Origin: Leucoraja erinacea
Lineage: Eukaryota
NCBI RefSeq assembly: GCF_028641065.1
Contig: NC_073398.1
Span: 28,334,001-28,398,000 of the forward strand
Direction of reading: 5' to 3'
Length of the DNA stretch: 64,000 nt
Made by a program: the position numbers and the translations under genes. The notes under the pieces are model-generated. The model worked only from the letters and a program-made list of their open reading frames with translations. It was not told the origin of the DNA and did not search any database. How positions within the stretch are numbered: the stretch's first letter is position 1; each line of letters begins with the position of its first letter. Below are positions 40,833 to 64,000 of the stretch, one piece after another.

Positions 40833-40860
40833 CTGAAGAAGGGTCTCGACCCGAAACGTC
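40833..40860 (+). ncRNA. Minimal hammerhead ribozyme motif (Penelope-derived)
   Basis: Same 28-mer as 52719-52746. Confidence 0.55.
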
Positions 40861-42340: not shown

Positions 42341-42345
42341 ATATA

Positions 42346-43220: not shown

Positions 43221-43384
43221 TATTACAATAAGGTTAATGGGGCTCTGTATATTACCCTTCTTGTGTAGGGAGTGGATGAGGAAATGTGACGAGTTAGAAC
43301 TGGTGTGCAATGGGCGATTAATGGTCAGCATGGAGTTGCGACAAAGTACTTGGTGCCGTTTTTTGTTTTCAACGAATCAATCAA

Positions 43385-44290
43385 ATAATTTGGATGATGG
43401 ATTTGATGGCAGTGGCCATGTTTATGGATGATACAAAGATATGTGGAGGAGTAGGCAGTATTGAAGCAAGGCGTTTGCAGAATGACTTAAGACAGGTTGG
43501 AAGAGCGGAAAAAAAGGGGCAGATGGAATACAGTGTAGCAAAGTGTGCGGACACGCACTTTGGTAGTAGGAATGAAGGTGTAGATTACTTTCTAAATGGG
43601 GATTCAGCAATTTGACGTTTAAATGGACTTGGAAGTGCTGGTGCACGATTCCTAAAGGGTTAATTTGCACGTTAAGTTGTTAGTAAAGGAAGGCAAATGC
43701 AATGTTAGCATTTATTTGGAGAGAACTGGAATATAAAAACAAGAATGGTAATGCTGAGGGTTTATAAGGCACTGCTCATACCGCATTTGGAATATTGTGA
43801 GCGGTTTTGGGCCTCGTATTGGCAGAGGGATGTGCTGGCATTGGAGAGGGTCCAGAGGAGGTTTACGAGAATGATCTTGGGGATGAATGGGTTAATATGT
43901 GATGAGCGATTGACGACCCTGGGCCTGTATTTGCTTGAGTTTATAAGGATGAGGGAGGGGCCTAATTGAAACGTACTGAATAGCGAAAAGCAAAGATATG
44001 CCTGCATAGAATGGATGTGGACAGGATATTTCCACTAATGGGGGAGTCTGGAACCAGACCTTAGAATAAAAATAAATATCTTTAGTCAGAGGGTGGTGAA
44101 TCTGGAATTCATTGTTACAGACGACTATGGAGGCTGTCATTGGGTATTTTAAAGCAGAAATTGGCATAAGGGTGTCAACGGTTACAGGGAGAAGGTTGGC
44201 GAATGGAATTGAAAGTGATAGATTAGCCAGCATTGAGTGGCGAAGTAGACTCGATGAGCCAAATGGTCTAATTCTGCTCCTATAATTTAT
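43385..44290 (+). mobile_element. CR1 LINE 3' part
   Basis: DDTKICG, YKAL..PHLEYC..FW and LERVQRRFTRM motifs, then a CR1 3' UTR. Confidence 0.88.
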
Positions 44291-46459
44291 AAACTTACGA
44301 ACTTCTAAATGGTTGTACGGCAACCTTTCTACCCTTGCAAAGCGAATGAAAACTAGTATCCAACGTGCTTGCTGGACAATTTTTCTAGTTATTCGACTTG
44401 AAGAAGGGTCCTGACCAGAGTGTGGTCTTTCCACATTCTCCAGAGATGCTGTCTGAGCCGCGGAATTACTCCAGCACTTTGTGTCACAACGTTTACAGTT
44501 CCTTGTGTCTATAATGTATCTACTTGTGTTGTTACAGTTGGGGATCCTTTATATTGGAAATGGCAAAGTCCACGTTTATGGCTACACACCTGGCTCGATT
44601 GTGCTCCACGGAAACTGCCCGAACAGTGAACTGTCTCAATGAGACCGAGTTAAGAACTTAGTGCACCATTGTCGGGGCAAGGTGCAGCGTGTGATCCGAG
44701 TGCCCGGAAAAAGGCTGCCTCGACCGTTGCAGAAATTGTCTATGAGACGCATTTTATGAAATTTGGCGGATCAGGACTTTTGAAACTCGTCCAAGAAAAA
44801 CAAGTGGGCGTGTCGCATATTTGGCGCTGTGTGCAAAGATCCTATAGCTGTTTGTTTCCTGGTTTCCTTTATTAACTTTGCACCACGTCCCGCTGCGAAA
44901 ATGAATCCTGTAGAGATGACCGCGATTTTTCAATATGAGGGTTTTAGTGTCCTGACAACCCAAAAGGAGAGGGGACAAATGCAACCCGAATAATGAGTGA
45001 GTGTGTTTCGGTTGACGTGGCATGAAACTGGTAGTTCGCTGCAAAGATCTATAAAATCTTTGGTTCGCTATTGGTTTCATATTCACGGCTCGAACATTCA
45101 AGGTTCAAGGGCGAGGAGGGTGAGCGGTGACGGATCAAAGGGGGGAGCGGGGCGAGGGGACGAGGGGCAAGGGTTTGGGGAGGAAGAGTTGCGCGGGACG
45201 GGCGGCAATGGGCAGGGAGGGAAAGGGGACGGGACAGCGGGGACTGTGCATGGAGAGGGGGTGGTACATGGGGAGAAGGACAGAGGGGAGGATGAGGAGC
45301 GAGTGGGGAAAGAGGGACGCGATGAAACTATATAGTAATATGCAACAGATTCCACAGACTGGTGTTTAGCGAGGCCGTGTTGTTTACCAGAACACTTTAC
45401 AAACTGCGCGACCCGATGAGTTGCTCCGGAAGTTTGTGTATTTTGCTTTGTAAAAACAGCATCTGCAGTTCCTTGTGTCAACAACTGTGCTGCTGCCGTT
45501 GGGTGATTGTGAAATGTGACCTCTAGATCCCTTTGTTTCTCAGTATTGGCTGTACCACCATTTACAGCATAGGGCATTGTCTGATACGTCCTCACAAAAC
45601 TTATCAACTAATATGGCGAATACAAATAAACATGTTTAATCCTCTCTTGCGACCTCGGGCTCCACACACGGTTGAGTCCTGCTCTTCCCCGCAACTTTCT
45701 ATAGGCGGGGCAGCAAAATGTCTGACTGTAAACAAGTTGTTTTCTGTCCGGACACAATAAACTTTACCGCAATGAGAGCGAGTTAACGACTTAGTACAGT
45801 GTTCGGGGATTGGTACAGCGTGTGTGACCCAATGATCCGCACTATGATCCGCCGACCACTGCATACATTTGTATACGAGTCGCATTTTATAAAAAAAGTT
45901 TGAGTGTTAGGCCGTTTGAAACTTGTCAGACAAGAAAAGCAAGAAAAGACAAGGAACTGCAGATGCCAGAGAAAGATACACGTAGTTTTGGAGTAACTCA
46001 GCGGGTCATGCAGCATTTCTGGAGAACATGGATAAACGAATCTTAAGAAGGGTCCCGAAACAAAACGTCGACCATCTATGTTCTCCAGAGAAGCTGCCTG
46101 ACCCCAGCCTTTTGTTCATTTATAACACTAATAAACAGGTGGAGTCGTTGAGGGTCTTTCGGTTTCGTTTCCGCACAGCCCCCTGCCGGGAATGACGGAT
46201 GTGGCCGAACTGAAGACGGTACCAGGCTCCGGACAACCCAAAGGGAGAGGATAAATGCGATCCAAATACTTTGTGAGTTTGTGTTTGGATAGTTCGCTGT
46301 TGGGTTCACCTTCGCATTCGCGCCCCGAACATTTCAAGTTCAAGGGCGAGGGAGGGCGGAGGGGGTAAAGCAAGAGAGGGACGTGGACGTGAGTGGGGGG
46401 GGGGGGGGGGGGAGGGAAGTAAAGGAGGTGAGCGGTGGGGGAGGGAGGGGGAAACCCGG

Positions 46460-46493
<34 letters not shown>

Positions 46494-47032
46494 GAAATAA
46501 GGGCTCAGGGAAGTGAATAATAGTCGCAATGAAATGAAACAATCTGGTCGACACAGCGATAGAGTTGCTGCCTCACAGCGCCGGAGACCCTAAAAATAAA
46601 ATAGAAGGCAAAGGATCCCACCGCGGACCAGCCTGGTGTACAGTGAGGTGTCACACAAAATGCTGGGGTTACTCAGCGGGACAGGTAGCATCTCTGGGGA
46701 GAAGGAATGGGTGACATTTGTGGTCGAGACACTTCTTCAGATTGAGAGTCAGGGGAGAGAGAGAGACTAGAGATATGTAGAGTAAAGTGTGAAATGCTAA
46801 ATGCATTTCGTTGTCTCTGTACTGTACACTGACAATGACAATTAAAATTGAATCTGAATCTGAATCTGAAAGCAACTTCCTTGAGGCGTGTTGTTTACCA
46901 GAACCCATTTATATTTCTCGGAAATGTTACTCAATTGGTTAGAGGTGGAGCTAATGGGCTGGACCAATAAGATACCAACCACCTCCTTCCCTCCCCCTCC
47001 CCCCCCCCCCCCCCCCCCCCCCCCCTCTGAGC

Positions 47033-48562
47033 CAAAGATCTTATAGCGGAGCAACATGGGTTACTCTCACGCAAACGTGAGGTCCGCTCATGGGCGGATT
47101 CATGGGTGATTATGATTTGTAGCAACCAGCCCCCGCCATCTTGTTCCGCCCAAAGATTGGATCCGCAGCGGGGGAGGGGAGAGTGGGGGGGGGGGGCAGC
47201 AGGGAGAGGGGGCATAGGAGGGGGGAGACATTGTAGTGTGGGGGCAGGCGAGAGAATGCCGGGGGGGTAAGGCCTAGTGTGTGTGAAGTTGCAGGGAGGT
47301 TTACAATGTTTCTTATTTACAATATTTCTTATTTAATGTCCCTTGTCTAGTCTGAAATAAAGTTCATCATTGAATCAGAAGAAATATAATTATGTGTGTT
47401 ATATGATATATATTTATATAATTTTCATGTATGTATGTTTATAAACATTTTATTCTTTAACAAGAATTAACAGAATTATGAACTAACAGATTATGAATCT
47501 AACCCTTTCTCACACACAAAAAGTCCCCCCCCTGTCAATTACCCTGCGAGTCGGGTCGGTTCCGGTTTGCTACAAAATCAACTCAAACACTGCTTGTGAG
47601 CCATTTAAAAAATAAATGATTTAAAAAAAATTCAAAAAGACAATTACCAGAGTCAAATTTTATTCTTGACAAGAAGTTTGAACTGGCAGATTTATGAATC
47701 TAACCGACACAAACTGTTGCCCCGCAACATTGATTACACTGTGAGTCGGGTCGGGTCAGGTAGGCTCAGGTTACTAAAATGGGCGGCGAAAAATGCCCAA
47801 GATCCTCCTCCATAGCGTACTACACGTCAGCCCATTGCATTTAGCAGGAGTAGCCTATCTTGCTCCGCTATAAGATCTTTGGCCGGGAGAGGGAGTGTGT
47901 AGGGGATTATAGGACTCATTTTAGCAACCAGTCCCCGGATCTTGTTCTGCCATTTTGCTTCTGGCCAGTGTGGGGCCCGGGGATAAAGCCTAGTGTGTGT
48001 GAAGTTGCGGGGAGGTTTACAATGTTTCTTATTTAATGTCCCTTGTCTAGTCTGAAATAAAGTTCATCATTGGATCAGAAGAAATATAATTGTGTGTGTT
48101 ATATGATTGTATACATTTATATCACATTCATGTAGGTGTGTTTATAAACATTTTATTCTTTAACAAGAATTAACAGAATTATGAATCTAACCCTATATCA
48201 CGCACAAAAACTTCCCCCGCAATGCCAATTACCCTGCGAGTCGGGTCGGTTCAGGTTACAAGAAAATCAACTCAAACACTGCTTGTGAGCCATTTAAAAA
48301 GAAATGATTTAAAATATATTAAAAAAGACAATTACCAGTCAAATTTTATTCTTGACAAGAAGTATGAACTGACAGAATGATGAATCTAACCCTATATCAC
48401 ACACACAAACTGTTAATTGATTACACTGCGAGTCGGGTCAGGTAGGCTCCGGTTACTAAAATGGGCGGGGAAAAATGCCCAGGATCCCCTCCGTAGCGTA
48501 CTACATGTCAGCCCATTGTATTTAGCAGGAGTAGCCTATCTTGCTCCGCTATAAGATCTTTG
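47033..48562. mobile_element. Non-autonomous hAT-like transposon with a tandemly duplicated right end
   Basis: TIR CAAAGATCTTATAGCGGAGCAA, with inverted copies ending at 47881 and 48562. Perfect 8-bp TSD CTCTGAGC (47025-47032, 48563-48570). Confidence 0.88.
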
Positions 48563-50210: not shown

Positions 50211-50520
50211 GTATTGGCTCATGCAAGTCATTGAGTATTGACATGCACTGAAGCACATGAGATCATCGGTCTTAGGATCACAATCCACAGGTCAAGGGTC
50301 CAGTGTTAGCCCAGCCGTGTCAACAGCAGTGCCCTCTGACAATAAAGGTCAACCCTGTGACCCTGGAGGATGTGGACCATTTATTATTTATTTGGAGCCG
50401 TCTTCTGATGAAATTTTGTATCAACTTGGTTTGTTATCCATCGCTCCCGAGGCACTGTTCCTGAAGATTTGGAGAAGATGCTTAAAAAAATAACTTGTTC
50501 TATTTTTAATCTTCAAGGCA

Positions 50521-50575
50521 ATGGATTGTACGTTGAGAAAGATGCTGTTGTCATTGCTGCTGTTCCCTAGCTTGG
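50521..50575 (+). CDS. IgV-TM-NACHT-LRR receptor, signal-peptide exon
   Basis: MDCTLRKMLLSLLLFPSL with phase-1 donor G|GTGAGT. An AG acceptor at 50516-50517 implies an upstream non-coding exon. Confidence 0.8.
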
Positions 50576-51274
50576 GTGAGTGTTCATCTGAATGGAGAGA
50601 TTGTGTACATTTGTCATCCACTAACTGGCTGCTTCTCACAAGTTATGAATCTGATCTTAGAGGCAATTAAGTTTTCTGTTTCATTCATTGCCTAATTTAA
50701 GATTGAAGAGTAAACCCTTTGCTCAACAATATAACAAAGATGCTCACACAATTTTTCTTTCATTGCTTATTTGCCTATTGAGGTGACATTATTCTCCTGC
50801 TTTTACCTTAATTTCAATCCTTTTTCCCTTCATTTCATTTTGTAACTAAAGTAATATCTTGTAAAGTGTGATAGAGTCAGTCGATGTGGAAACATGTCAG
50901 TGGATTGGATTTGTGGCATGCTGATATCTATAGCATACCACAGCCAGAGAGCAGTGCTGAACTACTATCTACCTCTTTGGTGACTCTCAGACTTTCCTTG
51001 TTCGGACTTTGCTGGCTTTACCTTGCACTAAACATTATTCCCTTGTCCAGCACTGTAATACACTGTAAATAAACTGTACACTGCCTGGCTCAATTGTTAT
51101 CATGTATTGTCTTTCTATTGACTGGATAGCACGTAACAAAAGTATTTCACTGTGCCTCGGTGCATGTGTCAATAAACTAAACAACTCTGTTGGAGCACAG
51201 GAAGTTTGGAGGTAGATGACTCCAACTTTATCTGCAAGTTAACGCATGCATTTTCATTTCCTCTATTTTCCCAG

Positions 51275-51622
51275 CTGAAGGATCTTTCTCTCGATCCTTT
51301 GGGATGTTGAATAGAGACATCCTGTTGCCCTGCGCCTTCCATGCTTCATCTAATTTCAATCTGAAAAATCTCATCATCACATGGCAGCGGACAGGCAGTC
51401 TCGCCGTGGTTTACAGTTTCTATTCTGGAACAATCCATCCGGAGCATCAGGACAAAGCATTCCTGGACCGCACTCAACTATTTCTCTCCGAATTCACCAA
51501 AGGGAATGCGAGCCTGAAATTGGAAAGAATGTTGTTATCTGATGTGGGAAACTACAGTTGTTTTGTAACTGTAGATGATGGAATGCCACACATTGAGAAC
51601 GTGGTGGAACTAAAATTAAATG
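51275..51622 (+). CDS. IgV-TM-NACHT-LRR receptor, B7/butyrophilin-family IgV exon
   Basis: DILLPCAF...LIITWQR...VVYSFYSG...QDKAFLDRTQLFLSEFTKGNASLKL...DVGNYSCFV carries B7-H3/B7-H4/HHLA2/BTN-type motifs. 348 nt, phase 1/1. Confidence 0.93.
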
Positions 51623-51689
51623 GTGAGTGCATCTTGTGACAGATAGATCGATGTTTTGTTGTGTACATTTCATAGAATTGTAAAGCACA

Positions 51690-52370
51690 GAAAGGGAATC
51701 TTTTGGCCGTCTCATACCAATGCTATTCTCTGCAAATCCCATTTGTCTGCATTAGACCAGTGTCTTTCCCATCCAAGTACCTTTCCAAATGTCTTTCAAA
51801 CATTGTCATAGTATCACTTTCTACTACTTCCTCTGGAAGCTCATCCCAGATATTGTCATCCTGTGTGAAAACATTCTCATCAGATCTCTTTTAAAAGTCT
51901 CTCCTCTCACCTTGAACCTGGTCTTTGTCTCGACCCGCAATCTTATCTGTCCATTTCCCTCCGTGGATGTCGAGTTTCTCCTGCATTTTTGTATTTTGAT
52001 CAAGATTCCAGCACCTGTCACAACTTGCATCCCCATTAAACCTGTGCCTTCTAGTTCTGGCTCCCTGCGGAAAAAGACTCTGACTATATCCCATTGATAT
52101 CCAATTTAAACTGGTAGAGGCAGAATCCCCGGTTGTCTGGCATTCCAGTGAGTGAAAAACCAGCCTTTCCATTTTCTCATTATAATTACAGTCCACTATT
52201 CTGGGCGACATGTGCTGAATATCTTGTGAATGCTTTTACAATAACACTTCCTGTAACGTGACAACTGGAACGGCACTCAGTATTCCAAATGCAGTGTAAG
52301 CAGTGTTTAGTACAGCTCCAACATGATGTTCCAACTCTTGCAGTCATTGCCCTGGCCTATGAAAGCAAAG
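51690..52370 (-). mobile_element. CR1 LINE 3' fragment in the IgV-TM intron
   Basis: ERL..HSLEC, RTR.HRF and FKVRGE.FKRD motifs on the minus strand. Confidence 0.75.
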
Positions 52371-52718
52371 GGACCATCCGATTTGTGTTTTGCTATCTCT
52401 GGTGATAGGATTGGAAGTGCAAGTGAATAAGTGCCTCATCTAGGAAGTCTGTATCCCTGGACAGTGGGAAGGGAAGAGATGAAAAAGCAGGTTTTGCAAC
52501 TTCTGCGATTGCATGAGAGAGTTTCCCAATCTTGGGAGCGATTGATAATACAGAAGACCGGACCAGGGCAATAGATATAATGTAAAACAGTGCAGCACAG
52601 GAACAGGATATTCGGCCTGCAAGGTCCACGCCAAACATGATGTCAGGTTAAAATAACTGCCCTCTGCCTGCACTCAAACTTTCTTCAAAATGCTGAAAAG
52701 GGAGGAGAGGAAAGTAGT

Positions 52719-52746
52719 CTGAAGAAGGGTCTCGACCCGAAACGTC
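52719..52746 (+). ncRNA. Minimal type-I hammerhead ribozyme motif in a Penelope pLTR-derived repeat
   Basis: CTGAAGA-A-GGGTCTCGACCC-GAAACGTC: CUGANGA core, stem II, GAAA, palindromic ACGU in place of stem III, GUC cleavage triplet. Confidence 0.6.
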
Positions 52747-53613
52747 ACCCATTCATTCTCTCCAGAGATGCTGCCTGTCCTGCTGAGTTACTCCGGCATT
52801 TTGTGTCTACCTTCGATTTAAACCAGCATCTGCAGTTCTTTCCTGCACAGAGGAAAATACATGTTTGGTGGTCAAGTCTTGTTGGAGCTGCTGGAATTGG
52901 CAAAGATGATCCATTGAACAGAGAGACAACTGGGTCCAGGGAACTCTGTTGTGTAGGAAGGAACTGCAGATGCTGGTTTACACCAATGATCGACACAAAA
53001 AGCTGGAGCAACTCAGTAGGTCGGGCAGCATCTCTGGAGAAAAGGAATAGGTGATGTTTCAGATCGAGACCTTTCTGTTCAGACTGCAATATCAATTTGT
53101 CGCTCGCCAATCCCTGAACTGACGACAGAGATCCAGAAGGAGAAGGGGAGTGTCAGATGCTCTAAATTGGAAGCAAAAATGGAAGGTATTTGAGTTGTGC
53201 CTGAGTGCAGGAAGCAGCACTGATATAATCGTCAACGTACTAGAAGATGAGTTGAGGGGTGTGCCAGAGTTGCCCCAAAACAGTGATAGCTTCCTATATC
53301 CCACAAAAAGACCGGCATAGCTTAGCCCATGTGAACTGCACTGTTGATCTGGAGACTATGGTCATGGTCCATTTGTGACAGGTTTGTATCGTGTGAGCAC
53401 TTGTTGCTTATAAAAAGTTGTATTCAAAATAGAAGACTTACACTACTATTACACTTGCAATAAAAAAGGGTCCATCAGATTTTTACAATTCTGTTCCCAA
53501 ATGCAAATTATAAAATTATTTACATTATAATATATCTTGATTTGAAAATGTGGTTTAGCTCAATTCTTAATTGAACACTAACCATTTGTTTTTTTGTGTT
53601 CTGAACATCGTAG

Positions 53614-53763
53614 ATATATCGGAGAATAATACATCCGGTGGCACCGATCCAGCTTCAGAAAGGAAAAAGCTTGTACTCGTACTTCCAGCGCTACTCATTT
53701 TAATTGCAGTTGGAATTTTGCATTGGCAAATGAAAAACAAGAAGAAACCAGATATTGAAGAGA
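53614..53763 (+). CDS. IgV-TM-NACHT-LRR receptor, stalk + transmembrane exon
   Basis: DISENNTSGGTDPASERKK-LVLVLPALLILIAVGILHW-QMKNKKKPDIEE. 150 nt, phase 1/1, A|GTGAGT donor. Confidence 0.88.
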
Positions 53764-53875
53764 GTGAGTAAAATGTTTAGGATTTTGGCCATTAATCACA
53801 CAAACTGAATACCTATTCGAGAATGTGTTCAGAACACTGCATTGGGAATGGATTTCTAGGCACTTTCAGCCATAG

Positions 53876-54088
53876 TGTGGCGGCTCCTAAGGGTCGTCCC
53901 ATTATACTGCCGAACCCCTCGGCACAGGAGTGGTGCAGTCCGGAGGCGGTCCTTAGCCGGAGGGTATAAAAGGCAGGGTTTGGGTGCCATCTTTGCCTGG
54001 TTTCGTCTTCCCCTGAACCGGGAGGAAATAAAGTATAGTGCTTCTCAAACTGCGGACTACTTGTCTCATTTGAGACCCACGCACTACA
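53876..54088 (+). repeat. 5' LTR
   Basis: TGTGG...CTACA, with TATAAA at about 53965 and AATAAA at about 54027. Identical by eye to the 3' LTR. Confidence 0.95.
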
Positions 54089-54089
54089 T

Positions 54090-54104
54090 TGGTGACCCCC
54101 GACG
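54090..54104 (+). promoter_or_regulatory. Primer-binding site, tRNA-Trp type
   Basis: TGGTGACCCCCGACG just after the 5' LTR matches the complement of the tRNA-Trp 3' end (TGGTGACCCCGACG) with one extra C. Confidence 0.85.
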
Positions 54105-54117
54105 CTCCATTGGCATC

Positions 54118-55071
54118 ATGATGGAGACCGAACAAAGCCCTACCTCCTCACACGCCAGCCCGACCCTATCTCTGGACGCGGTCTCCGTGAAACTGCCCAG
54201 CTTCTGGACCACACGGCCGCTCATCTGGTTCCAGCAGGCGGAGGCCCAGTTCAACCTGCGGGGCATCACGGTCGATGCCACCCGCTTCTATTACCTGGTG
54301 GGGGCCCTCGACCAGGATGCGGTGGAAGAAGTATCGGACTTCCTCGCAGCCCCCCCGGACAATGATAAATATCTCGGCCTGAAACAGCTCCTGCTCCAAA
54401 TTTACGGACTAAGTAGGATGGAGCGGGCAGGTAGGATCCTGCATATGGGGGGCCTGGGCGACCGGCGGCCATCTACCCTCCTAAAGGAAATGGTGGCGTT
54501 ATTAGACGGGCACACGCCGTGCCTGTTGTTTGAGTACACTTACCTGCATCTGCTGCCGGCCTACATTCGATTGCAGCTCACCGACGCCTCGTTTGCTGAT
54601 CTTCGGGCCCTCGGGAGGCGCGCCGACGCCATGTGGTTGGCGCGCCCTGATGACGTCAGCGCGCTGGGCGTCAGCAGAGACGAGGTCGCGCTCAGGTCGA
54701 CGCGCCCGGATGACGTCAACGCGCTGGACGTCGGCAGGCACGCCGGTGACGTCAACGCGCTGGCCGTCGGCAGGCACACCGATGACGTCAGCCCAGCAGC
54801 TCCCGATTTCCTCCGGTGGGGCGGGGGAGCTGTGGAAGGAGTGACAGCTCCAGCCCGACGGCCCGCTCGATTACCCCCAGCGGCAGTGAGGGGTACTGCA
54901 CCTGCAGTCCAGCGCCAGCAAGCTGCAGGCACCACCAGCAGGAGCAGGCAAGCTCCAAATAACACAAACAGAAGGTGCTGGTGCTATTTCCATCAGCGCT
55001 GGGGTGCTGCAGCACGACAATGCCGCCAGCCGTGCACGTTTCCGGGAAACGCCTGGGCCGGCTGCCAATAG
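54118..55071 (+). CDS. gag: Gypsy Gag
   Basis: VSVKLPSFW...WFQQAEAQF and a C-terminal CYFHQRWGAAARQCRQPC (Cx2Hx9Cx3C). Slippery GGGAAAC at 55044-55050 before the stop. Confidence 0.9.
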   Translation: MMETEQSPTSSHASPTLSLDAVSVKLPSFWTTRPLIWFQQAEAQFNLRGITVDATRFYYLVGALDQDAVEEVSDFLAAPPDNDKYLGLKQLLLQIYGLSRMERAGRILHMGGLGDRRPSTLLKEMVALLDGHTPCLLFEYTYLHLLPAYIRLQLTDASFADLRALGRRADAMWLARPDDVSALGVSRDEVALRSTRPDDVNALDVGRHAGDVNALAVGRHTDDVSPAAPDFLRWGGGAVEGVTAPARRPARLPPAAVRGTAPAVQRQQAAGTTSRSRQAPNNTNRRCWCYFHQRWGAAARQCRQPCTFPGNAWAGCQ

Positions 55072-58000
55072 TCCCCGCGGTGGCCGGCCAAATTCACCGC
55101 CTTTTCGCTTGGGATCGGCGCTCCGGGACTCGTGGATACAGGTGCGGAGCTCAGCGTCCTGCCCCCTTCGCTGGCCGACATTCGTTCCGGTAAGCGGGGG
55201 CCCGTCCTCACCGCGCCGAACGGCAGCCCCATCCGCACATATGGACTGCGCATGGTTCCCATCGTGCTCGGCTCCTGCCATTTTTCATGGAACTTTACCG
55301 TTGCCGACGTCTCCCAACCATTGCTCGGGGCCGATTTTCTCCGGACGCATTCCCTCATGGTGGACGTCGGGCGTCAGCGTTTGGTCAACGCCACTACAAT
55401 GGAGCCGATCACGTTGCGCTTGGGTCAACCGGTGGGACGGCCACTGGCGTCCGTGGACTCCCGATACGCACAAATCTTGGCTGCGTTCCCGGACATTCTC
55501 ACTCCGCAGTTTCATTCGGCAACCCCCAGCCACGGAGTTGTACATTATATCCCGACTACCGGCCCACCCCTCCATGCACGAGCACGTCGACTGCCACCAG
55601 ATAAACTGCGTCTGGCACGGCGGGAATTCCGCACGATGGAGGCCTTGGGGATCGTCCGCCCTTCGAGCAGCCCTTGGGCGTCCCCACTCCACATGGTCCC
55701 TAAGTCAAGTGGGGGCTGGCGACCTTGTGGGGATTACCGACGGCTGAACGCTGCAACAACAGCGGATCGATACCCCGTACCCCACATCCAGGACTTCACG
55801 GCCCATTTGGCTGGGGCCACATTTTTTTCGAAAGTGGATCTGATGCGGGGTTATAACCAGATCCCGGTTCACCCGGATGACGTACCCAAGACGGCTATCA
55901 TCACGCCATTCGGGCTTTACGAGTTTACTCGGATGCCGTTCGGCCTCAAGAACGCTGCACAGGCCTTTCAGCGCCTCATGGACGGGGTTTGTCGTGACCT
56001 CGAATTCGTATTCGTGTACCTGGACGACATCCTGGTGGCCAGCCGCTCGCAGCAGGAACACTGCGCTCACCTTCGACAGCTCTGTCAGCGGCTCAGCGAG
56101 CATGGTTTGGCCATCAACCTGGACAAGTGCCGTTTTGGGGTCAACGAAATTGACTTTCTCGGCCACCGCGTGACTGCGCAGGGCGCGGTTCCCCTACCTG
56201 ACAGGGTTGACGCCGTCCGTCGGTTTCCCCGCCCACGCACGGTGCGTGGCCTGCAGGAATTTGTCGGCATGGTGGCATTCTACCATCGTTTCGTGCCATC
56301 CGCGGCCCACATCATGCGGCCCCTGTATCAACTTCTGGCGGGTGGGCAGCAGAAGAGCGTTGAGTGGACCCACGAGGCGGAGGCAGCTTTCGACGGCGCG
56401 AAGGAGGCCCTTGCTCGGGCCGTGCTGCTGGTGCACCCGCGGGAAGATGCCCCGACTGCTCTCACTGTGGATGCCTCGGAGTCGGCAGTTGGTGCTGTAC
56501 TGGAGCAGCTGACGGGCGGAGTTTGGCGGCCTCTGGCCTTCTTCAGTCGGCACCTCAACCGCGCGCAGACCAAGTACAGTGCGTTCGATCGTGAGCTCCT
56601 GGCTCTGTACCTGGCTGTGCGCCATTTTCGTTACTTCCTGGAGGGCCGCCCGTTCACCGCCTACACCGACCATAAGCCGCTCACTTTCGCCCTGCAGAAG
56701 GTTTCCGACCCCTGGTCCGCACGTCAGCAGCGGCAGTTGGCTTACATCTCCGAGTACACCACAGCCATCCGCTACGTCAAGGGGAAAGAGAACCGGGTGG
56801 CCGACGCATTGTCCCGCCCTGCTATAAATGCCGTGTTCGAGGTGGCGCCCGGATTGGACTATTCTGCTCTGGCGGCGGCACAGCTCACGGACGACGAGGT
56901 ACCCACCTACCGGACTGCCATCTCCGGACTCCGTCTTGAGGATGTCCCTCTCGGTCCTGGGGGTATGACAATCCTGTGCGATGTGTCGTCCGGTCAGCCG
57001 CGCCCCATCGTCCCTGCCACCTGGCGCCGGAGAGTGTTCGAGGTCATCCACGGACTGGCTCACCCATCAATCCGGGCGACAACGGCACTGGTGGCAGCTC
57101 GCTTCATGTGGCACGGTCTGCGCAAGCAAGTTGCCCATTGGGCTCGCACCTGCATCCCGTGCCAGACAGCAAAGATCCAGCGCCATGTCCGCGCACCTCT
57201 CCAGGAGTTCGGTCTACCTCACCGGCGGTTCGACCATCTCCACGTGGACATTGTGGGGCCCCTTCCACCGTCCCGGGGCATCACCCACCTTTTGACCATG
57301 GTGGACCGCTTCACGCGGTGGCCGGAGGCCATTCCGTTGGCTGACACCTCATCGGCTACGTGTGCTCGTGCGTTGTCCGCGCACTGGATTGCTCGCTTCG
57401 GGGTGCCGGCGCACATCTCCTCCGACCGGGGGCCACAGTTCACCTCCGAGCTGTGGTCAGCCATGGCTCGCTTGCTGGGGGTGCAGCTGCACCACACCAC
57501 GGCTGACCACCCCCGCAGGCTAACGGTCTGGTGGAGAGGTTCCACCGGCAGCTGAAGGCGGCATTGAAGGCACGGCTCACCGGCCCGGACTGGATGGACG
57601 AGTTGCCGTGGGTCATGCTGGGCATCCGGACCGCTCCCAAAGAGGACTTGGCCTCATCATCGGCGGAGCTGGTTTACGGGTCGACACTCACAGTGCCCGG
57701 GGAGTTCGTGCCGTCGGCGCCGGAGCAGCAGGAAACGCCCTCCTCCACCCTTCAACGCCTTCGTGAGCGAGTTGGCAGGCTCGCACCCGTCCCGACATCC
57801 CGCCATGGGTCATTTCGCCCACACGTGCCAATGGCCCTCACGGACTGCCCATACGTCTTCCTGCGCCGTGATGCCCACCGGACGCCACTTCAGAGGCCGT
57901 ACGAGGGCCCGTTCCGGGTGCTGGAACACGGGCAGTCGACTTTTGTCCTGGACATGGGGGGCCGGCCGGAGGCCGTGTCGATTGCCCGTTTAAAGCCGGC

Positions 58001-58200
58001 GCACCTGGACATTGACCAGCCGGTGCTGGTTGCTCAACCTCGGCCCCGAGGGCGTCCCCCCTCACGACTCCCTCCACCTGTCACTCCACCTGTCCCTCCA
58101 CCTACCTACGCCCCCGCAAGCCCCGGGATCTGCTGTCTTCCGCACGCGGGCCGGCCGGGTCGTGCGCCCGCCGGTGCGTTTTGTGCCTCTGGTTCTGGGG
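55044..58200 (+). pseudogene. pol: Gypsy Pol (protease, RT, RNase H, integrase) with frameshifts
   Basis: DTGA protease, YLDD RT, DAS/ELLA/TDH RNase H, HHCC, DDE and GPF integrase motifs. Frame breaks near 55130 and 57510. Confidence 0.9.
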
Positions 58201-58208
58201 GGGGGTCC

Positions 58209-58421
58209 TGTGGCGGCTCCTAAGGGTCGTCCCATTATACTGCCGAACCCCTCGGCACAGGAGTGGTGCAGTCCGGAGGCGGTCCTTAGCCGGAGGGTAT
58301 AAAAGGCAGGGTTTGGGTGCCATCTTTGCCTGGTTTCGTCTTCCCCTGAACCGGGAGGAAATAAAGTATAGTGCTTCTCAAACTGCGGACTACTTGTCTC
58401 ATTTGAGACCCACGCACTACA
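58209..58421 (+). repeat. 3' LTR
   Basis: Copy of 53876-54088, followed by the TSD ATAG. Confidence 0.95.
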
Positions 58422-58487
58422 ATAGTGTATATGACATCCTTTGAGAGGAACATGTTCTAACATGTGGTTTATTCTATTTCTTTTTAG

Positions 58488-58517
58488 TGATTCATTTACT
58501 GGAAGACAATATAAAAG
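58488..58517 (+). CDS. IgV-TM-NACHT-LRR receptor, 30-nt cytoplasmic micro-exon
   Basis: Strong acceptor TTCTATTTCTTTTTAG and donor AAG|GTAAAG. Phase 1/1, encodes MIHLLEDNIK. Confidence 0.7.
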
Positions 58518-58564
58518 GTAAAGAACCAACCTCCGTTGAGATTTTCTTAAGTTATGCAGACTTA

Positions 58565-58997
58565 CCTACGTAGAGCTGGCCGGCTTCGGGGCGTGGAGAG
58601 CGGCGGTGGCACGTTGATGCGACCCGGCTCCGGTGGATGGTAACACCAGGAGCTCGCGGATCCCCGGTGGGAGACTGCTTTGCGGGGCACCGGCAGCGGT
58701 GACTTCTCCAGCCCGAATTGCGGCCTTAATTTGCCCTACAACGCCCGGCGCGGCCTTAATTTGCCGCGGACTAGCGTCCGCCGGGGGCTTTGACCTCGAC
58801 TTCGGGAGGGAAATGGAGTGCAGGGGAGAGACAAGAACTTTGCCTTCCATCATAGTGAGGAGGAGAGCCACTGTGATGGATGTTTATGTGAATAGTGTTG
58901 GTGTGTGTTTTGGTTCTTTTATTGTATTGTATGGCTGCAGAAACTACATTTCGTTTGAACCTCATGTGAGGTTCAAATGACAAATAAAGGTATTGTA
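58565..58997 (+). mobile_element. GC-rich non-autonomous retroelement in an NLR intron
   Basis: Reverse-complement similarity to 5330-5520. Ends in AATAAAGG plus a (TATTG)n tail. Confidence 0.6.
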
Positions 58998-60187
58998 TAT
59001 TGTATATAGTTTCTGCCCACAATAGTAGAAGTGGTCTCCTTGTCCACTACTGGAATCTGCCATGGAATTAATCTTCAGAAGGGTGTGAAATAATTGTTTT
59101 TAGAATGTGGTCGTTGAATGAATAAAATAATTGAATATGAATTTTGAAAGAAAGAACATACAAAATATATATAAAATCCAGACCTGTTTGAGCAAAGTAT
59201 CTTAACAAGAAATTAATTTTATTCTTTTCAGGAAGCCCATCCAGTCTCACAGCTCATTCAGCAGCTTGACCTTTTAAGCCACATCAGGCTAGAATGGCAG
59301 ATAACTGAAATTATTGATGCAGATGGAATTTGACGGCAGTCTTGTCACTTCCTCATCACCTTTACTGAGATTGTTTGAATCTTCAATTCCACAGCTGCTG
59401 TGGTGGGATTTAGGCTGATGTCACTTGATCAATGGTCCAAGCCTGTAGATATTAATCACTATGCCAGCATACTCCACTGCTTGCCCTACTCCTCTCTGTA
59501 CAGCCTCATAGTGAACCTTGACACCATTGGTTCAATCAGTGTCCCTCACCCCTTGGTCTGGTGTAATCATACAGTGACCAACGTAGAGTCCCACCAGTAT
59601 GTCCTGAATGGTACCGTAGTGTTGGGTGCAAGGATAGTCCCTTGTTTCTCACTCCGTTTTGCTGCCCTCCAAATCATGGATCCATTCTACAATGGAGTTG
59701 CATGCTGGAAGATTATAATCTAGCCATTGAGTATTATTTGGCAGGAGCATCGTCATTCTGCATCATCCCCAAGCACCCAGGAATCCAAGGTTCACCTTCA
59801 AACTGTATCAGATTTTATTATGTGAAATATTTTCATAATGTGGATATTTTGAACTGTGTAACAAAGTGCCAACCAAAAGCTGGTGTAGATGATGAATGGA
59901 AAATCTGCAAGATTTTAATACCTGTGTCAGCAGGGCATACTGACCAACAGTTGGCAAATGGAATAGTATAGGTGGTTACTTGATGTTTGGCATGGACAAG
60001 GTGGGCTGAAGGGGCTGTTTCTGTGCTGCATAACTCTGACAACTTAAACCTGAAGCGATGTGGGAATTCTTAAAGGGGATCAGCAACTTGATGGATATCT
60101 GATGCTCACAGTTCTCACATTTTGTTAATCCATGATAATAAAATACTTGCTCGTTCTGAGAAATGTGTTTTTTTTTCTTTTCTTCAG

Positions 60188-61892
60188 ATGCCATTCTGAA
60201 TTATAAAGAGTACATCTTGAAAGATAAAATGCATTTATGTTGTTCATTAACACAACGGCGATTCGAAAACTATCCGCTTGCCAGAACCATCAATATTACC
60301 AACCCGAAGGAACAAGACCTAGATGGTGATCTTATCAGGAGCGATGACTCAAATATTGCACAAGAAGTACAAATTTCACAACTGCTGTCATTGCTTCGGG
60401 AAGAAAACTTCTCAAAGCGAGTCCTGCTGGTAGGTGATGCAGGAGTAGGGAAGAGTTGGACTGTTGTCAGCATGGAGCAAGAGTGGGCATCTCAACCAAC
60501 CCACCCCTTGAGGTGCGTCTTTGTTCTCAGATTCCGTGACTTGAATGAGGTTAAAGGAAAGACATCTCTCCGGGATCTGCTGAAGAAGCATTGCACACCT
60601 TTGTCATCAGTCCTAACAGAACTCCTCTCGAACCCTCAAGATGTGTTGATCATTTTGGACGGGCTGGATGAATTCGCCCATCAGTTGCAATGGAATCCAT
60701 CAGGTTGTGATTTCAACCTGGATAGTGAGGCTGAAGTAGGTGTTCTTGTTTCCAAACTAATATCCAAGAACCTCCTTCGAGAAGCCCAGGTGTTGGTTAC
60801 CTCCCGGTGGAATACCAAGCAGATAGAATTTAACAAGAAGTACTTTGATCAGCTTTTTGTTATCTCTGGCTTTACCAATGATCAGCTGAAAAGATATTGC
60901 GAGGTGTTTTGTGGAGAGAAGCAAAAGGCGGAAGAAATGTTTCAACGCATTACAGAGAATGCAACCATCAAATGTCTGGCTTCCAATCCCCTCAACAGCT
61001 TCATTCTGTGCAATATTTTGGACAAGTGTACCAGCTCTCAAGCAAATGTACCAGTGACAAATAGCAAAGTGTTTACATTGTTGCTGTACAGTCTGTGTAA
61101 CTGCAGCACGAGTAAAGAAACAGACGCTGAGAATAAGAGTGAAGAGGAGAAGCAATTGTTTAAAGACACCATCCTGAAACTGGGAGAACTATCCTTCAAC
61201 TCTCTGCTATCAGGGAAACTTAAAATAAATGTGACTGATCTGAAGACCTATGGAATAGATCCAGACATCCTTTCAAAATATCTCTCAAATCTTGTGCTGG
61301 ACTGTAAATGCCAAGGAGTCTTTGAGTTCCACCATGCAGTGCTGAAGGAACAATTTGCAGCTTTGTATTGTGCTACTTTACTCAACAATGAAGCTGAAGA
61401 GTTGGTCAAGTGTCTGGATCTGTGGTGCTTTGGGAAAATGCCACTAAATCAAATGAGCCAATTTTATTTGCAATCTTTTCAACCTGACCACACAGAGAAA
61501 CTGTACAATTTTCTGAGGTTTCTCACTGGCTTCTTAACCGCAGGAAGAGATGGCAAGTTGTGGAACTATACAACTCCTCTCCCTCCTTCTACAGCCATAG
61601 CTCTCACAACATGGTTCAAAAACAGCTTTCAGCGAGACATTAAGAAGGCAGAATTGCTGAATTTGATGCACTGTCTCTTTGAACTGAATGATGCCACTGT
61701 AACGGCAGAAGTATCTCCTTGCATCCGAGATGTGGGTTTTCACAACGTTTCTCTGAGCCCGCTCGATCTGCGTGCTTTGTGCTACTGTCTCAATCATTCC
61801 ACCGTGGAGGAGATGGATTTGAGGCACTGTAGCATTGGTGATAAAGGAATAAAGCAGCTCCAAGAAATACTAGTCAAGTGCAGAACTCTTTT
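60188..61892 (+). CDS. NLR (NLRC3-like) NACHT exon with HD1/WH/HD2 and first LRRs
   Basis: Walker A GDAGVGKS (60433-60456), Walker B LIILDGLDE (60646-60672), sensor-1 VLVTSR, FEFHHAVLKEQFAALY, FLRFLTG, LNLMHCLFEL, then MDLRHCSIGDKGIKQL. Acceptor TTTTCTTCAG (phase 1), donor TT|GTGAGT (phase 2). Confidence 0.96.
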
Positions 61893-63795
61893 GTGAGTAA
61901 TGATTTTCAAAAGAATATTAAGCTCCAGTTGCACTAATCTACCTTCTTGCATGCACAATGTTTGTTGACATGTTTTATACTTTTGTCACATTTTATGCCC
62001 TACATGTCCTGATTTATTCTAGCCCAGCTAATATTTGTGCCTGAAAGTTGTAATGAAATATATACAAATGGAGATACTACTCTTCAAGACTAGAATGGAA
62101 ACAATGTGTGCAATTATCTCCCTCAACTACATTGTTCTATGGTAACCCCACCCTCCTCCAATGTTGCCCTGTGGAGCTGCGATGAATCACAGAGCTGCAT
62201 TGTAATAACCACAAGGGCAGAGATTTAATTCTATGCATTCATTCTAGTTGTTGCTCTTATGAACACACTTGCATTGATCACTATAAAAAGACTTGGGGGC
62301 GGTTTGCTTTATCTGCAAATACACCTGTTGGGGGTTTGACCTTTCTGTAAATCTTGCCCCACCCCATTTCCAACGCAGCAGTGTCAATGGACAGGTATTC
62401 ATAAATCTAGAGGAACAGCATCTCCTATCTCACCTGGGTGGTCTACAACCTAATGGTATGAACATCAAATTCATGTAACCCCTCTGTCTATTTGTTGTCT
62501 CATGATACACCTAGATTATCTGTATGTCACTGTATGTCATGTTGTTACTTGTGGGTGGAGCACCTAGGCTAATTCCTTGTATGTGAATACTTGGCCAATA
62601 AACTTACTAACTTACTTACTTGTCTCATATGCCCCTTCTTTTCAAACCCAACCCCTCTTTCAGTTTCTGTAATCACCCTACCCCATCCCAAATGATTCCA
62701 TCTGTGTATCACTTGCACATTACACCCACTTGATTTCCCAATTCCCTCCACTGTTCCCCTTTTGCCCACTATCCCACCCTAATGTGGTTCCACTCACCAT
62801 TATCCTTTCTTATCAGATTCTATAATCTACCCATGTACCCATGTACCCATTATCACCTCCTCAGCTTCAGGTTCATCTCAGCATTCCTCATCTGGGCCCA
62901 CCTATTACTTAAGGACACAAAGTGCTGGGGCAACTCAGCGGGTCAGGCATCATCTTTGGAGAACACGGATCACTGACGTTTCAGTTCGGGACCCCACTAC
63001 AGACTGATCATTAGTTTGAAGAAGAATCCTGATATGAAACATAATCTATTACGTTCTCCAGAGATGCTGCCTGGCCTGCTGAGTTACTACAGCATTTTGT
63101 GTTCTTTTGTGTAAATCGGCATCTACAGTTCCTTGTTTCCTCTTTTACTGTACCACTCTACTGCTTTTTTTTAAATTGCTGCTTTTTTCCCTTTTTCCTT
63201 CCGCCCACAATATCTAAAAGAATATGTGATTCTGTTCCATTCTGTTTGTAGTTTGTTTGTTTGTTTGTCTTTTTGCACAAAGTCCGCGAGCATTGCCACT
63301 TTCCATTTCACTGCACATCTCGTATGTGTATGTGACGAATAAACTTGACTTGACTTGACTTTATGCTCTAAATCCTCGACCGCAAACATCGACTGTCTGT
63401 CTGCCGCCACCGATGCTGCTTAACCCGCTGAGTTCCTCCACTAGTTCGTTTTTGCTCCAGATTCCTGCGTTTGCTGTCTCTTGTATATCCAAATATCCAA
63501 ACATTGATTATTATCAACAAGGTTGAATTGATTTTGTGTATTAGAAAGTGCTCAAGCAGAAACAAAGGATCTCTTAAACTATGTAATTACCTGAAGTCAT
63601 TTTAAGCCCCATTTGCACTATCGTTCAAAAATCATTGCCCAGACACATGTGTTAGACCAAGGTTAGACTCTGCTCTCCCAGCAGTGCCACAATTGTTTAT
63701 TTTGCAGCTACCTTTGCAGGCAGCAGTTTGTGAGGATTGTGTTCTGTCCCCAGGCACTCGGGTCTCTAATTGTTTTCAACGTCTTGTGTTTCCAG

Positions 63796-63882
63796 GGTAA
63801 GCTCCAACAAACTGACTGTAAAGTCAGCAAAGAGTTTGAATGCCGTCCTTGAAGACCCAAAGTGCAGGATTGAGACATTATC
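63796..63882 (+). CDS. NLR single-repeat LRR exon
   Basis: 87 nt, phase 2/2, (L)VSSNKLTVKSAKSLNAVLEDPKCRIETL, a ribonuclease-inhibitor-type LRR. Confidence 0.88.
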
Positions 63883-63977
63883 GTGAGATTTTTCATCACA
63901 TAAATCCTCTTGTAAAATTCTCCAAGTTTCTATAGAGCTTCTAATCGCTGACATTTGCCATTTGGTTCCGTTTTCAG

Positions 63978-64000
63978 GTGTGGTACAAACTCTTTTGGTT
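63978..64000 (+). CDS. Start of the next LRR exon, truncated by the window
   Basis: TTTTCAG acceptor after a 95-nt intron. Phase 2 gives (S)CGTNSFG, fitting the LRR xxxNxxG register. Confidence 0.7.

Follow-up and report, generated by a model that had tools for sequence, protein, structure and literature searches.

A skate gene of an old gnathostome family encodes a predicted membrane-anchored NOD-like receptor with a B7-type IgV domain

Does a vertebrate gene join a B7-type ectodomain to a NOD-like receptor within one membrane protein? In the textbook view, vertebrate NLRs are sensors in the cytosol that recruit effectors through N-terminal death-fold domains. The question was raised by a stretch of 64,000 nucleotides from Leucoraja erinacea (the window), in which the initial annotation had joined seven stop-free exons, with GT-AG sites and intron phases 1,1,1,1,2,2, into a chain of signal peptide, B7 IgV domain, transmembrane (TM) helix, NACHT and LRR. 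In this study, we found that the skate gene at 46.1-64.0 kb is the 5' four-fifths of a RefSeq 'protein NLRC3-like' of 982 aa. The full spliced product is represented by two database proteins, XP_055509288.1 (P0125) and P0001, with which the window exons were compared one by one. The exons translated open, and XP_055509288.1 (L. erinacea, 982 aa) showed 100% identity to each window exon translation, in order. Its split codons were A, D, M, D, L and S, matching the prediction from the window exons. The acceptors at every boundary are polypyrimidine-AG, and the donors read GTGAGT, GTAAAG or GTGAGA. The features of the locus are as follows.

46119 to 46272, plus strand: first exon, 5' UTR and in-frame ATG at 46255 (MRSKYF at 46255-46272; donor GTGAGT at 46273)
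50518 to 50575, plus strand: signal-peptide exon (acceptor AG at 50516-50517; internal ATG at 50521; phase-1 donor; residues 8-25 of XP_055509288.1)
51275 to 51622, plus strand: IgV exon of B7-H3/B7-H4 type (Pfam V-set, PDB sequence matches, AF2)
53614 to 53763, plus strand: exon for stalk, TM helix and polybasic stretch (NNTS sequon, LVLVLPALLILIAVGILHW, KNKKKP stop-transfer stretch)
53876 to 58427, plus strand: LTR retrotransposon, 4.55 kb, sense, in intron 3 and outside the protein (paired LTRs and pol ORF)
58488 to 58517, plus strand: 30-nt mini-exon, (M)IHLLEDNIK (RNA splice to 60188)
60188 to 61892, plus strand: large exon for pre-NACHT linker, NACHT, winged helix, HD2 and first LRR (Pfam, Foldseek, RNA contigs)
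63796 to 63882, plus strand: LRR exon, 87 nt, phase 2 (RNA joint 61892>63796)
63978 to 64000, plus strand: next LRR exon, start only, as the window ends (RNA joint 63882>63978)

The exon that had been placed at 50521-50575 kept its donor end, but its start was revised: it begins at 50518, and a further exon on its 5' side has its end at 46272. MRSKYF occurs in the window only at 46255. The upstream ATG adds MRSKYFA to the protein, and the N-termini of XP_055509288.1 and P0001 both begin MRSKYFAMDC. The 5' limit of the first exon, near 46119, was estimated from an RNA contig reaching 738 nt upstream of 60186, assuming no further intron. The exon region carries an ISRE-like motif at 46157-46171. 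Residues 807-982 of the 982-aa protein (176 residues; further LRRs and the helical tail) are encoded beyond window position 64000. A tblastn search with XP_055509288.1 over the window returned this gene's exons alone and no paralogue.

Public contigs and RNA reads agree with this chain. An intron-free public contig of 3,341 nt encodes P0001 (982 aa), with the same exon chain and 99% identity. The splices 58517>60188, 61892>63796 and 63882>63978 were seen in RNA contigs from three studies and in raw RNA reads, and spliced joints were found across RNA runs from four studies. RNA reads were mapped on 58230-64000, where raw-read depth was about 1, a low expression. The joint 58517>60188, which the initial annotation had proposed to check by RNA, was spanned by one raw read and by one contig in each of three runs. 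The joint 61892>63796 was spanned by 6 raw reads and 3 contigs. The joint 53763>58488, between exons 3 and 4 as counted from the signal-peptide exon, lies outside the mapped region; its support comes from P0001, from the RefSeq model and from the lengths of contigs.

These data bear on whether two adjacent genes, one for a B7-like IgV-TM protein and one for an NLR, were wrongly merged in the gene models, or whether the chain is a rare read-through transcript. Such a reading would suit the exon 3 > 4 joint being left uncovered by mapped reads, the low expression, and the read-through stop at 53769-53771, which would yield a short IgV-TM protein. However, the in-frame chain is present in the intron-free contig, and three RNA contigs pass through the mini-exon and reach 402-738 nt past the NACHT exon on its 5' side. 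The chain is also modelled in more than 30 species of five vertebrate classes, with a homologous linker in all. At this low depth, RNA showed no joint into the 60188 acceptor besides 58517>60188, no first exon in 58518-60187 and no use of the candidate terminal exon 59232-59269. The separate IgV-TM and NACHT transcripts that had been considered at the outset, with that terminal exon and a first exon of the NACHT part's own, thus gained no support, and we regard merging or read-through as extremely improbable. One gene is expressed, and one transcript encodes the signal peptide, B7-type IgV, TM, NACHT and LRR.

Intron 3 is long because it contains the LTR retrotransposon. The two LTRs (53876-54094 and 58209-58427; 219 nt) are 99% identical, and a pol ORF is open at 55132-57555. 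These features, and the position of the insertion with the TM exon on one side and the mini-exon on the other, might suggest that a young, sense-oriented element is inactivating the skate copy. This is very unlikely: no exon is damaged and the splicing of the mRNA is correct, in RNA from animals that may or may not carry the insertion.

The predicted cytoplasmic part is a NACHT-LRR module. Exon 60188-61892 matched the Pfam families NACHT (1.2e-26), NLRC4_HD2 (1.3e-14) and NOD2_WH (3e-4), together with a first LRR. In an alignment of 22 sequences, G284, G289, K290 and S291 of Walker A (GDAGVGKS) and D359 and D362 of Walker B (LIILDGLDE) were invariant, and R408 of sensor-1 (LVTSR) and H584 of the winged helix (FEFHH) were at least 90% conserved. 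The three ATPase motifs that had been described as preserved are intact, along with the winged-helix His. The top Foldseek match was ADP-bound rabbit NOD2 (5irm, E 5e-30). The LRRs matched Pfam LRR_6, and AF2 showed repeated strand-helix units at residues 716-882, about six of ribonuclease-inhibitor type, of which about the first two are encoded inside the window. A conserved three-helix tail follows them and matched no Pfam family. Pfam gave no match to CARD, PYD, BIR or B30.2 (SPRY/PRY) on XP_055509288.1, and no known effector domain is present.

The predicted ectodomain is of B7 type. The IgV exon matched Pfam V-set at 4.8e-6, with 27.2 bits against a gathering score of 26, and carries the Cys pair, the WQ, GRT.LF, GNASL.L and SD.G.Y.C motifs, and the sequons NAS and NYS. 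In a PDB sequence search, the best matches were VTCN1 (1.7e-14) and CD276 (domain E-value 2e-12, with some 40% identity), followed by BTN3A (1e-6), MOG and PD-L1. AF2 predicted a beta-sandwich at residues 28-140, with pLDDT of about 80-88. No second Ig exon was found, Pfam gave no match to a membrane-proximal IgC, and a glycosylatable stalk of about 20 residues alone separates the IgV from the TM helix.

The signal peptide and the TM segment were assigned by hydropathy and by the -3/-1 rule, together with the AF2 helix. The N-terminus reads MDCTLRKMLLSLLLFPSLA followed by EG, with a putative cleavage site between them. A single hydrophobic segment, with a Kyte-Doolittle score of 2.64 (19-residue window) at residues 161-179 and an AF2 helix at 164-182, is followed by KNKKKP, and orthologues have a TM segment in the equivalent position. 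The protein is very probably a type I membrane protein, with the IgV outside the cell or in the endosome/phagosome lumen and the NACHT-LRR in the cytosol. The end of exon 3 and the mini-exon together form an acidic dileucine motif, EMIHLL, of the type [DE]xxxL[LI], which is present in 17 of the 22 family members. This motif could direct adaptor-dependent endocytic cycling.

The initial annotation had taken Ig- or TM-bearing NLRs to be known only from invertebrates. The architecture is not confined to them, as matching gene models were found in sharks and rays (at least 12 elasmobranch species), in gar and lungfish, in many amphibians (frogs and salamanders) and in alligator. Coelacanth and turtle models are N-truncated, and predicted isoforms of sawfish, caecilian and axolotl (P0010, P0015, P0136) lack the IgV and retain the TM. 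Homology in the family alignment spans the IgV through the C-terminal tail. One clade (SH-aLRT 100) united the elasmobranch, coelacanth and amphibian members that were sampled for the tree, with branching that mirrors the species tree. Because these members fall in one clade, the fusion is, on sequence grounds, older than the split of cartilaginous and bony vertebrates. The view that exon shuffling made the receptor therefore fails for a skate or chondrichthyan invention; given this clade and the spread of the architecture from elasmobranchs to alligator, any shuffling is placed before the gnathostome radiation. The family was not seen in teleosts, birds or mammals among the matches examined. 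A bichir/reedfish match (P0266) was rejected as a member, as it is a CARD-type NLR.

The nearest outside relatives, on a tree built without true mammalian NLRC3 sequences, were CARD-type 'NLRC3-like' genes of teleosts and Xenopus, which were sister to the family at about 32% identity. The RefSeq name 'NLRC3-like' looks automatic, since orthologues carry varied names (NLRP1, NLRP5, NOD1, NLRC5-like and others). The architecture is present in RefSeq under generic protein names and was apparently never described in papers. No description of an Ig/TM NLR in vertebrates was found in the full-text literature, with subscription journals outside its coverage. Elasmobranchs have 1-2 copies each, and the amphibians Discoglossus, Pelobates and Pleurodeles have several. 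Identity between skate and amphibian proteins was 30-39% in the IgV and 24-42% in the NACHT NBD. The conservation of the IgV on a par with the NACHT NBD, together with the low elasmobranch copy number, argues for a partner that has itself been conserved, and against an arms race. In the alligator copy the P-loop is degenerate, and ATPase-driven switching is therefore not universal in the family.

The adjoining upstream gene, with its last exon some 8 kb before the first exon of the IgV-TM-NLR gene, encodes a CD28/CTLA-4-like receptor. It has a V exon with a CTLA-4-like APPP loop and a tail exon with an ITIM and an ITSM. Nine other long upstream ORFs had no Pfam match. A complex model of the skate IgV with the neighbouring V domain scored 0.62 (runs 0.62, 0.64 and 0.61), compared with 0.01 for the best control. 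Of 78 solved complexes, 51 attained the 0.62 mark, as against 2 of 108 mismatched pairs; among eukaryotes, 39 of 65 solved pairs did so, as against 2 of 126 unrelated pairs. Between runs, at least 87% of contacts agreed, with partner pLDDT of at least 83. In the modelled interface, I99 and L101-L107 of the partner (the LAPPPTL loop) lie on the C-C'-C''-F-G face of the IgV. The predicted interface residues were no more conserved than other IgV residues (0.54 vs 0.58, p=0.66). The model supports binding of the IgV to the neighbouring receptor, with the proviso that it may be recall of B7:CTLA-4 or PD-1:PD-L1 complexes and cannot tell which family member binds.

It is doubtful that the IgV is the physiological ligand of this PPP-loop ITIM+ITSM receptor, the two forming a primordial checkpoint pair that sharks through reptiles retained and mammals lost. 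If they did, cytosolic NOD-like sensing would be hard-wired to display toward an inhibitory lymphocyte receptor. To our knowledge, mammalian B7-H3 and B7-H4 are still orphans, and such a pair would point to the type of receptor to seek for them.

Taken as a whole, the locus is probably best explained as an expressed skate gene for a membrane-anchored B7-IgV NLR of an old gnathostome family, with the topology and mechanism proposed here. The mechanism by itself is tentative, at somewhat under an even chance: the protein would act as a ligand of the B7 family, with a NOD-like switch for a cytoplasmic tail. On the cytosolic face the NACHT-LRR would oligomerise in a nucleotide-dependent way, and the single TM helix would couple this to clustering of the IgV. 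The front sheet of the IgV would contact an Ig-superfamily partner, for which the PPP-loop ITIM/ITSM receptor encoded upstream is the best candidate. Coupling could run inside-out, with cytosolic sensing altering ectodomain display, as in butyrophilin BTN3A1 with its B30.2 domain. We rate this direction slightly above outside-in or reverse signalling.

In an outside-in arrangement, the protein would be a pattern-recognition receptor: a microbial or damage ligand, met at the cell surface or within the phagosome lumen, would bind to the IgV and so trigger oligomerisation of the cytosolic NACHT. An echinoderm analogue exists in sea-cucumber AjNLRC4, which has an extracellular Ig, a TM helix and an intracellular NACHT, is membrane-localised and functions in Vibrio phagocytosis (PMC8699970, PMC13133943). 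The conserved dileucine motif would suit endosomal or phagosomal traffic, and the multiple amphibian copies are what diversifying sensors would show. However, the skate protein has a single IgV, conserved like the NACHT over about 450 million years, and elasmobranchs have few copies. B7-type IgV domains are generally known as ligands of host receptors, and no clear route leads from one TM helix to the release of an LRR-autoinhibited NACHT. We consider an outside-in receptor rather unlikely.

Lipidation recruits NOD1/2 to membranes, and the signal peptide, IgV and TM might likewise only station an ordinary NLRC3/NOD-like sensor or regulator on the plasma or endosomal membrane, the IgV having no signalling partner. 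The complete, NOD2-like NACHT-LRR and the predicted IgV-less, TM-keeping isoforms are compatible with this. A TM helix alone would suffice for such a tether, however, and all lineages show strong conservation of the B7 signature in the IgV, which makes a pure tether distinctly improbable.

The proposed B7-type ligand with a NOD-like tail would create a physical link between NOD-like sensing and B7/CD28-type co-signalling, each of them a pillar of immunity. The family is predicted to replace the effector N-terminus of an NLR with an extracellular B7-type domain and a membrane anchor. It has been kept for about 450 million years and is retained in cartilaginous fish, non-teleost ray-finned fish, lungfish, amphibians and crocodilians. 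As a vertebrate counterpart that is open to testing, the family can be set beside both butyrophilin inside-out signalling and the echinoderm Ig-TM-NLR. Pleurodeles, axolotl and gar are tractable carriers, the candidate partner gene adjoins, and the Walker A lysine, the dileucine motif and the front face of the IgV are clear targets for mutation.

The skate protein resembles NOD2 and NLRC3-type cytosolic NLRs in its NACHT with Walker A/B, sensor-1 Arg and winged-helix His, its HD2 and its ribonuclease-inhibitor-type LRRs. Unlike them, it has a signal peptide, IgV, TM and dileucine motif in place of CARD/PYD, is a predicted integral membrane protein and has a conserved helical tail past the LRRs. 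With B7-H3 (CD276) and B7-H4 (VTCN1) it shares the IgV signature motifs, the phase-1 exon structure and the predicted type I layout, but it has a stalk of about 20 residues and no IgC, and an NLR of about 800 residues replaces the short cytoplasmic tail.

BTN3A1 signals inside-out once its B30.2 domain binds phosphoantigen. Like the skate protein, butyrophilins (BTN3A1: IgV-IgC-TM-B30.2) combine a B7-type ectodomain, one TM helix and an intracellular innate-immune sensor domain, whereas in the skate protein a NACHT-LRR replaces B30.2, IgC is absent and inside-out signalling is a hypothesis. TM-containing NLR models have been reported in sponges (PMC12909245). Cnidarians, too, have predicted NLRs with a TM segment. 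AjNLRC4, whose architecture was compared from papers only, has the same Ig-TM-NACHT order. It is reported without LRRs, whereas the vertebrate family has LRRs, a B7-type IgV and conservation across gnathostomes. As the vertebrate IgV is of B7 type, AjNLRC4 and the vertebrate family are likely to be of independent origin.

The seven exon intervals proposed for the IgV-TM-NLR gene in the initial annotation were stop-free in the proposed phases, with a pyrimidine tract and AG at the acceptors and GT(G/A)A(G/A) at the donors. Exon translations were found, exact and in the same order, in XP_055509288.1 (P0125, 'protein NLRC3-like', Leucoraja erinacea, 982 aa), and the split codons at the exon joins (A, D, M, D, L, S) were those of P0125, which identifies the window as DNA of the little skate. 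The spliced product was represented by database proteins only, and the exons were compared one by one. The ATG exon with which the gene had been thought to start was confirmed, but it begins at 50518 behind an AG acceptor and a further 5' exon lies upstream. The gene also extends past the window end, with 176 more residues (LRRs and helical tail) beyond 64000. Intron 3 owes its length to a young LTR retrotransposon, which has 219-nt LTRs that are 99% identical and an open pol ORF (protease-RT-RNaseH-integrase).

Ends 46272, + strand: 5' exon of the IgV-TM-NLR gene; an in-frame ATG at 46255 adds MRSKYFA
53876-58427, sense: LTR retrotransposon of 4.55 kb in intron 3 of the IgV-TM-NLR gene

An ISRE/IRF-type triple GAAA motif, TTTCGGTTTCGTTTC (46157-46171, + strand), precedes the ATG at 46255 by 84-98 nt and is the sole match in 64 kb (0.01 expected). 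RNA contig extents suggest that it belongs to the 5' UTR exon and does not lie ahead of the start site. The stretch 40000-48000, which contains the first exon of the gene, is GC-richer (0.43-0.49). Its GC skew is strongly positive, and its minus strand holds many ORFs of 115-180 aa, of which the two checked had no Pfam match.

The N-terminus of the encoded protein reads MDCTLRKMLLSLLLFPSLA and then EG, and resembles a cleavable signal peptide. Exon 2 encodes a V-set Ig domain, as had been proposed (Pfam 4.8e-6, above the gathering score), whose best solved relatives were CD276/B7-H3 (domain E 2e-12) and VTCN1/B7-H4 (1.7e-14), then BTN3A, MOG and PD-L1. Next comes a stalk of some 20 residues that carries an NNTS sequon, no IgC domain being present between the IgV and the TM helix; then follow a single helix of strong hydrophobicity (Kyte-Doolittle 2.64; AF2 helix 164-182) and KNKKKP. 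The 30-nt mini-exon completes an acidic dileucine motif, EMIHLL, which a linker of about 75 residues separates from the NACHT. Exon 5 carried the expected NACHT (1.2e-26), together with a NOD2-type winged helix, NLRC4_HD2 (1.3e-14) and the first LRR in Pfam. The STAND ATPase motifs of NACHT-WH-HD2 are intact; in the family alignment Walker A and B were invariant, and the sensor-1 Arg and the winged-helix His were invariant or nearly so. About six strand-helix LRRs and a conserved three-helix tail (AF2, residues 889-956) follow. The AF2 model (mean pLDDT 76, pTM 0.67) had ADP-bound NOD2 as its closest structure (5irm, E 5e-30). The claimed lack of a death-fold N-terminus also held, with no CARD, PYD, BIR or B30.2 in Pfam.

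We then asked for RNA evidence that these exons form one transcript. Among database proteins the nearest is P0001 (982 aa, 99% identical). It derives from a public contig of 3,341 nt, which must be spliced cDNA because the genomic span exceeds 17.7 kb. P0001 runs through all proposed junctions, including ...PDIEE-M-IHLLEDNIK-D-AILNYKEY.... RNA reads and contigs were mapped on 58230-64000, where raw-read depth was low (about 1). The junction 58517>60188, singled out in the initial annotation as a check, was found as a GT..AG joint in four studies (a single raw oligo-dT RNA read, and three further runs with one contig apiece). Six raw reads carried the 61892>63796 joint, as did three contigs; all four runs had 63882>63978. 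Three contigs entering the NACHT exon reached 402, 616 and 738 nt further 5', matching the size expected for exons 4-3-2-1 and 5' UTR. At this depth of about 1, no other joint into the 60188 acceptor was seen in the mapped region, and none used the alternative terminal exon 59232-59269, through which the IgV-TM part could have ended on its own. A wrong merger of two genes is very improbable, and inactivation of the skate gene by the intron-3 retrotransposon is also unlikely, if slightly less so.

Short stretches of very high depth (to about 1,600 in contigs) were present at 62476-63440 of intron 5 in all RNA runs, and loose ends and strand-switch joints were numerous there. The signal probably comes from a transcribed, abundant interspersed repeat and not from the IgV-TM-NLR gene.

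With the NACHT exon as query, models with V-set and NACHT were found in 11 sharks and rays. Rhinoraja makes one more: its IgV-TM is present by sequence, and its V-set is missing from the precomputed Pfam list. The N-terminal 205 residues returned only V-set+NACHT-type proteins and added Heptranchias. A caecilian match carries a homologous TM-KKKP-...LL-...Y..Y segment and, used as query, gave SP-IgV-TM-NACHT proteins in frogs and salamanders. A 22-member profile, run against 1.84 billion representatives with subsequent name look-ups, added spotted gar, alligator gar, African lungfish, both alligators, many more frogs, Pleurodeles and axolotl, as well as N-truncated coelacanth and snapping-turtle fragments. 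Among the matches examined, none came from a teleost, bird or mammal. In the family alignment, homology spans the IgV to the C-terminal tail, and [DE]xxxL[LI] occurs in 17 of 22 members. Skate and amphibian members were equally conserved in IgV (30-39% identity) and NACHT NBD (24-42%). In a maximum-likelihood tree of 47 sequences (quick search, SH-aLRT only; elasmobranch, coelacanth and amphibian members, without gar, lungfish and alligator), elasmobranch and (coelacanth + amphibian) members formed one clade with support 100, its shape following the species tree and its sister being CARD-type 'NLRC3-like' genes of teleosts and Xenopus. Since elasmobranch and bony-vertebrate members share one homologous clade, the fusion is, on sequence comparison, older than the cartilaginous/bony vertebrate split. 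The architecture is no skate invention and belongs to an old family across elasmobranchs, gar, lungfish, amphibians and alligators; nor are Ig- or TM-bearing NLRs confined to invertebrates, as had been supposed, because the chondrichthyan and wider vertebrate searches gave models in several vertebrate lineages. These results indicate that the IgV-TM-NLR is real, expressed and deeply conserved.

Several members vary in form. P0308 (Alligator mississippiensis, 975 aa) keeps IgV, TM helix, LRRs and tail, with a P-loop, LLVGNTAKIISRT, lacking GK[ST]; in crocodilians the protein may serve as a scaffold with no ATPase activity. GAGTGKS is retained in the snapping-turtle fragment. Among the predicted isoforms or paralogues P0010 (Pristis), P0015 (Rhinatrema), P0136 (Ambystoma) and P0012 (Stegostoma), some lack the IgV and retain the TM helix, and one skips the TM exon. 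Two IgVs stand in tandem in Pleurodeles P0134, a second locus (P0124, P0127) is present in Amblyraja, and in several frogs and newts the gene occurs as multiple linked copies. Thirteen proteins of 600-2,100 aa (P0182, P0186, P0190, P0194, P0197, P0219, P0226, P0230, P0239, P0244, P0250, P0263 and P0283) gave 4-15 separate profile matches each, the top-scoring match falling in the B7-like IgV part; either tandem arrays of related IgVs or merged gene models could explain this.

The protein is predicted, with high probability, to be of type I, its IgV facing the cell exterior or a lumen and its NACHT-LRR the cytosol, and to undergo endocytic cycling via the dileucine signal. A CD28/CTLA-4-like receptor gene lies directly upstream on the same strand and ends about 8 kb before the first exon of the IgV-TM-NLR gene.

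27208-27567, + strand: V exon; Pfam V-set 1.8e-8, CTLA-4 best PDB match (8e-5)
~30405-30716, + strand: C1-like exon; C1-set-like pattern C.AYGFYP...W...F.C.V.H
37705-37845, + strand: tail exon; ITIM ICYAKL and ITSM TVYSPV

In its V domain the FG loop reads APPP, as in the CD28/CTLA-4 type, and a GNGT J-like strand is present. Modelled as a complex, the NLR IgV and this V exon scored 0.62 (runs 0.62, 0.64 and 0.61; best control 0.01), a mark calibrated at 51/78 solved complexes against 2/108 mismatched pairs and, for eukaryotes, 39/65 solved against 2/126 unrelated pairs. The runs shared at least 87% of contacts, with partner pLDDT of at least 83, and the predicted interface places the partner LAPPPTL loop on the IgV C-C'-C''-F-G face, the canonical B7:CTLA-4 mode. 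The prediction supports, but does not prove, binding between the two domains; as B7:CTLA-4-type complexes are already solved, the score may reflect recall of solved family complexes rather than evidence for this pair. Predicted interface residues were no more conserved than the remaining IgV.

B7 IgVs are ligands of host receptors. Elasmobranchs keep one or two copies only, and an ectodomain evolving no faster than the ATPase together with so few copies would fit a conserved endogenous partner. For these reasons, and because of the receptor gene upstream, we tentatively favor a B7-family ligand with a NOD-like switch as its tail: the NACHT would oligomerise on the cytosolic face, this would couple to clustering or display of the IgV, and the displayed IgV would engage an Ig-superfamily receptor. 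An outside-in microbial sensor, like sea-cucumber AjNLRC4, is a less likely reading, and a role of the IgV-TM as a membrane tether and no more is less likely again.

Echinoderm Ig-TM-NACHT proteins have been described (PMC8699970, PMC13133943) and are the only ones described in the literature covered; TM-bearing NLR models were noted in sponges (PMC12909245). The IgV-TM-NACHT architecture is unmentioned in a whale-shark NLR survey, a zebrafish NLR paper and a vertebrate inflammasome survey, and full-text searching outside subscription journals gave no paper recognising a transmembrane or Ig-bearing vertebrate NLR. The gene models are already in public databases (for gar since 2015), where they bear automatic names (NLRC3-like, NLRP1 homolog, NOD1-like, 'uncharacterized'). 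By its NACHT-LRR core the skate protein is an NLR and would work like one, although it has no N-terminal death-fold domain. Its IgV is B7-type, but the B7 IgV-IgC layout is not present. Butyrophilins follow the same logic of a B7 ectodomain, a TM and an intracellular innate sensor, whereas the skate protein lacks B30.2.
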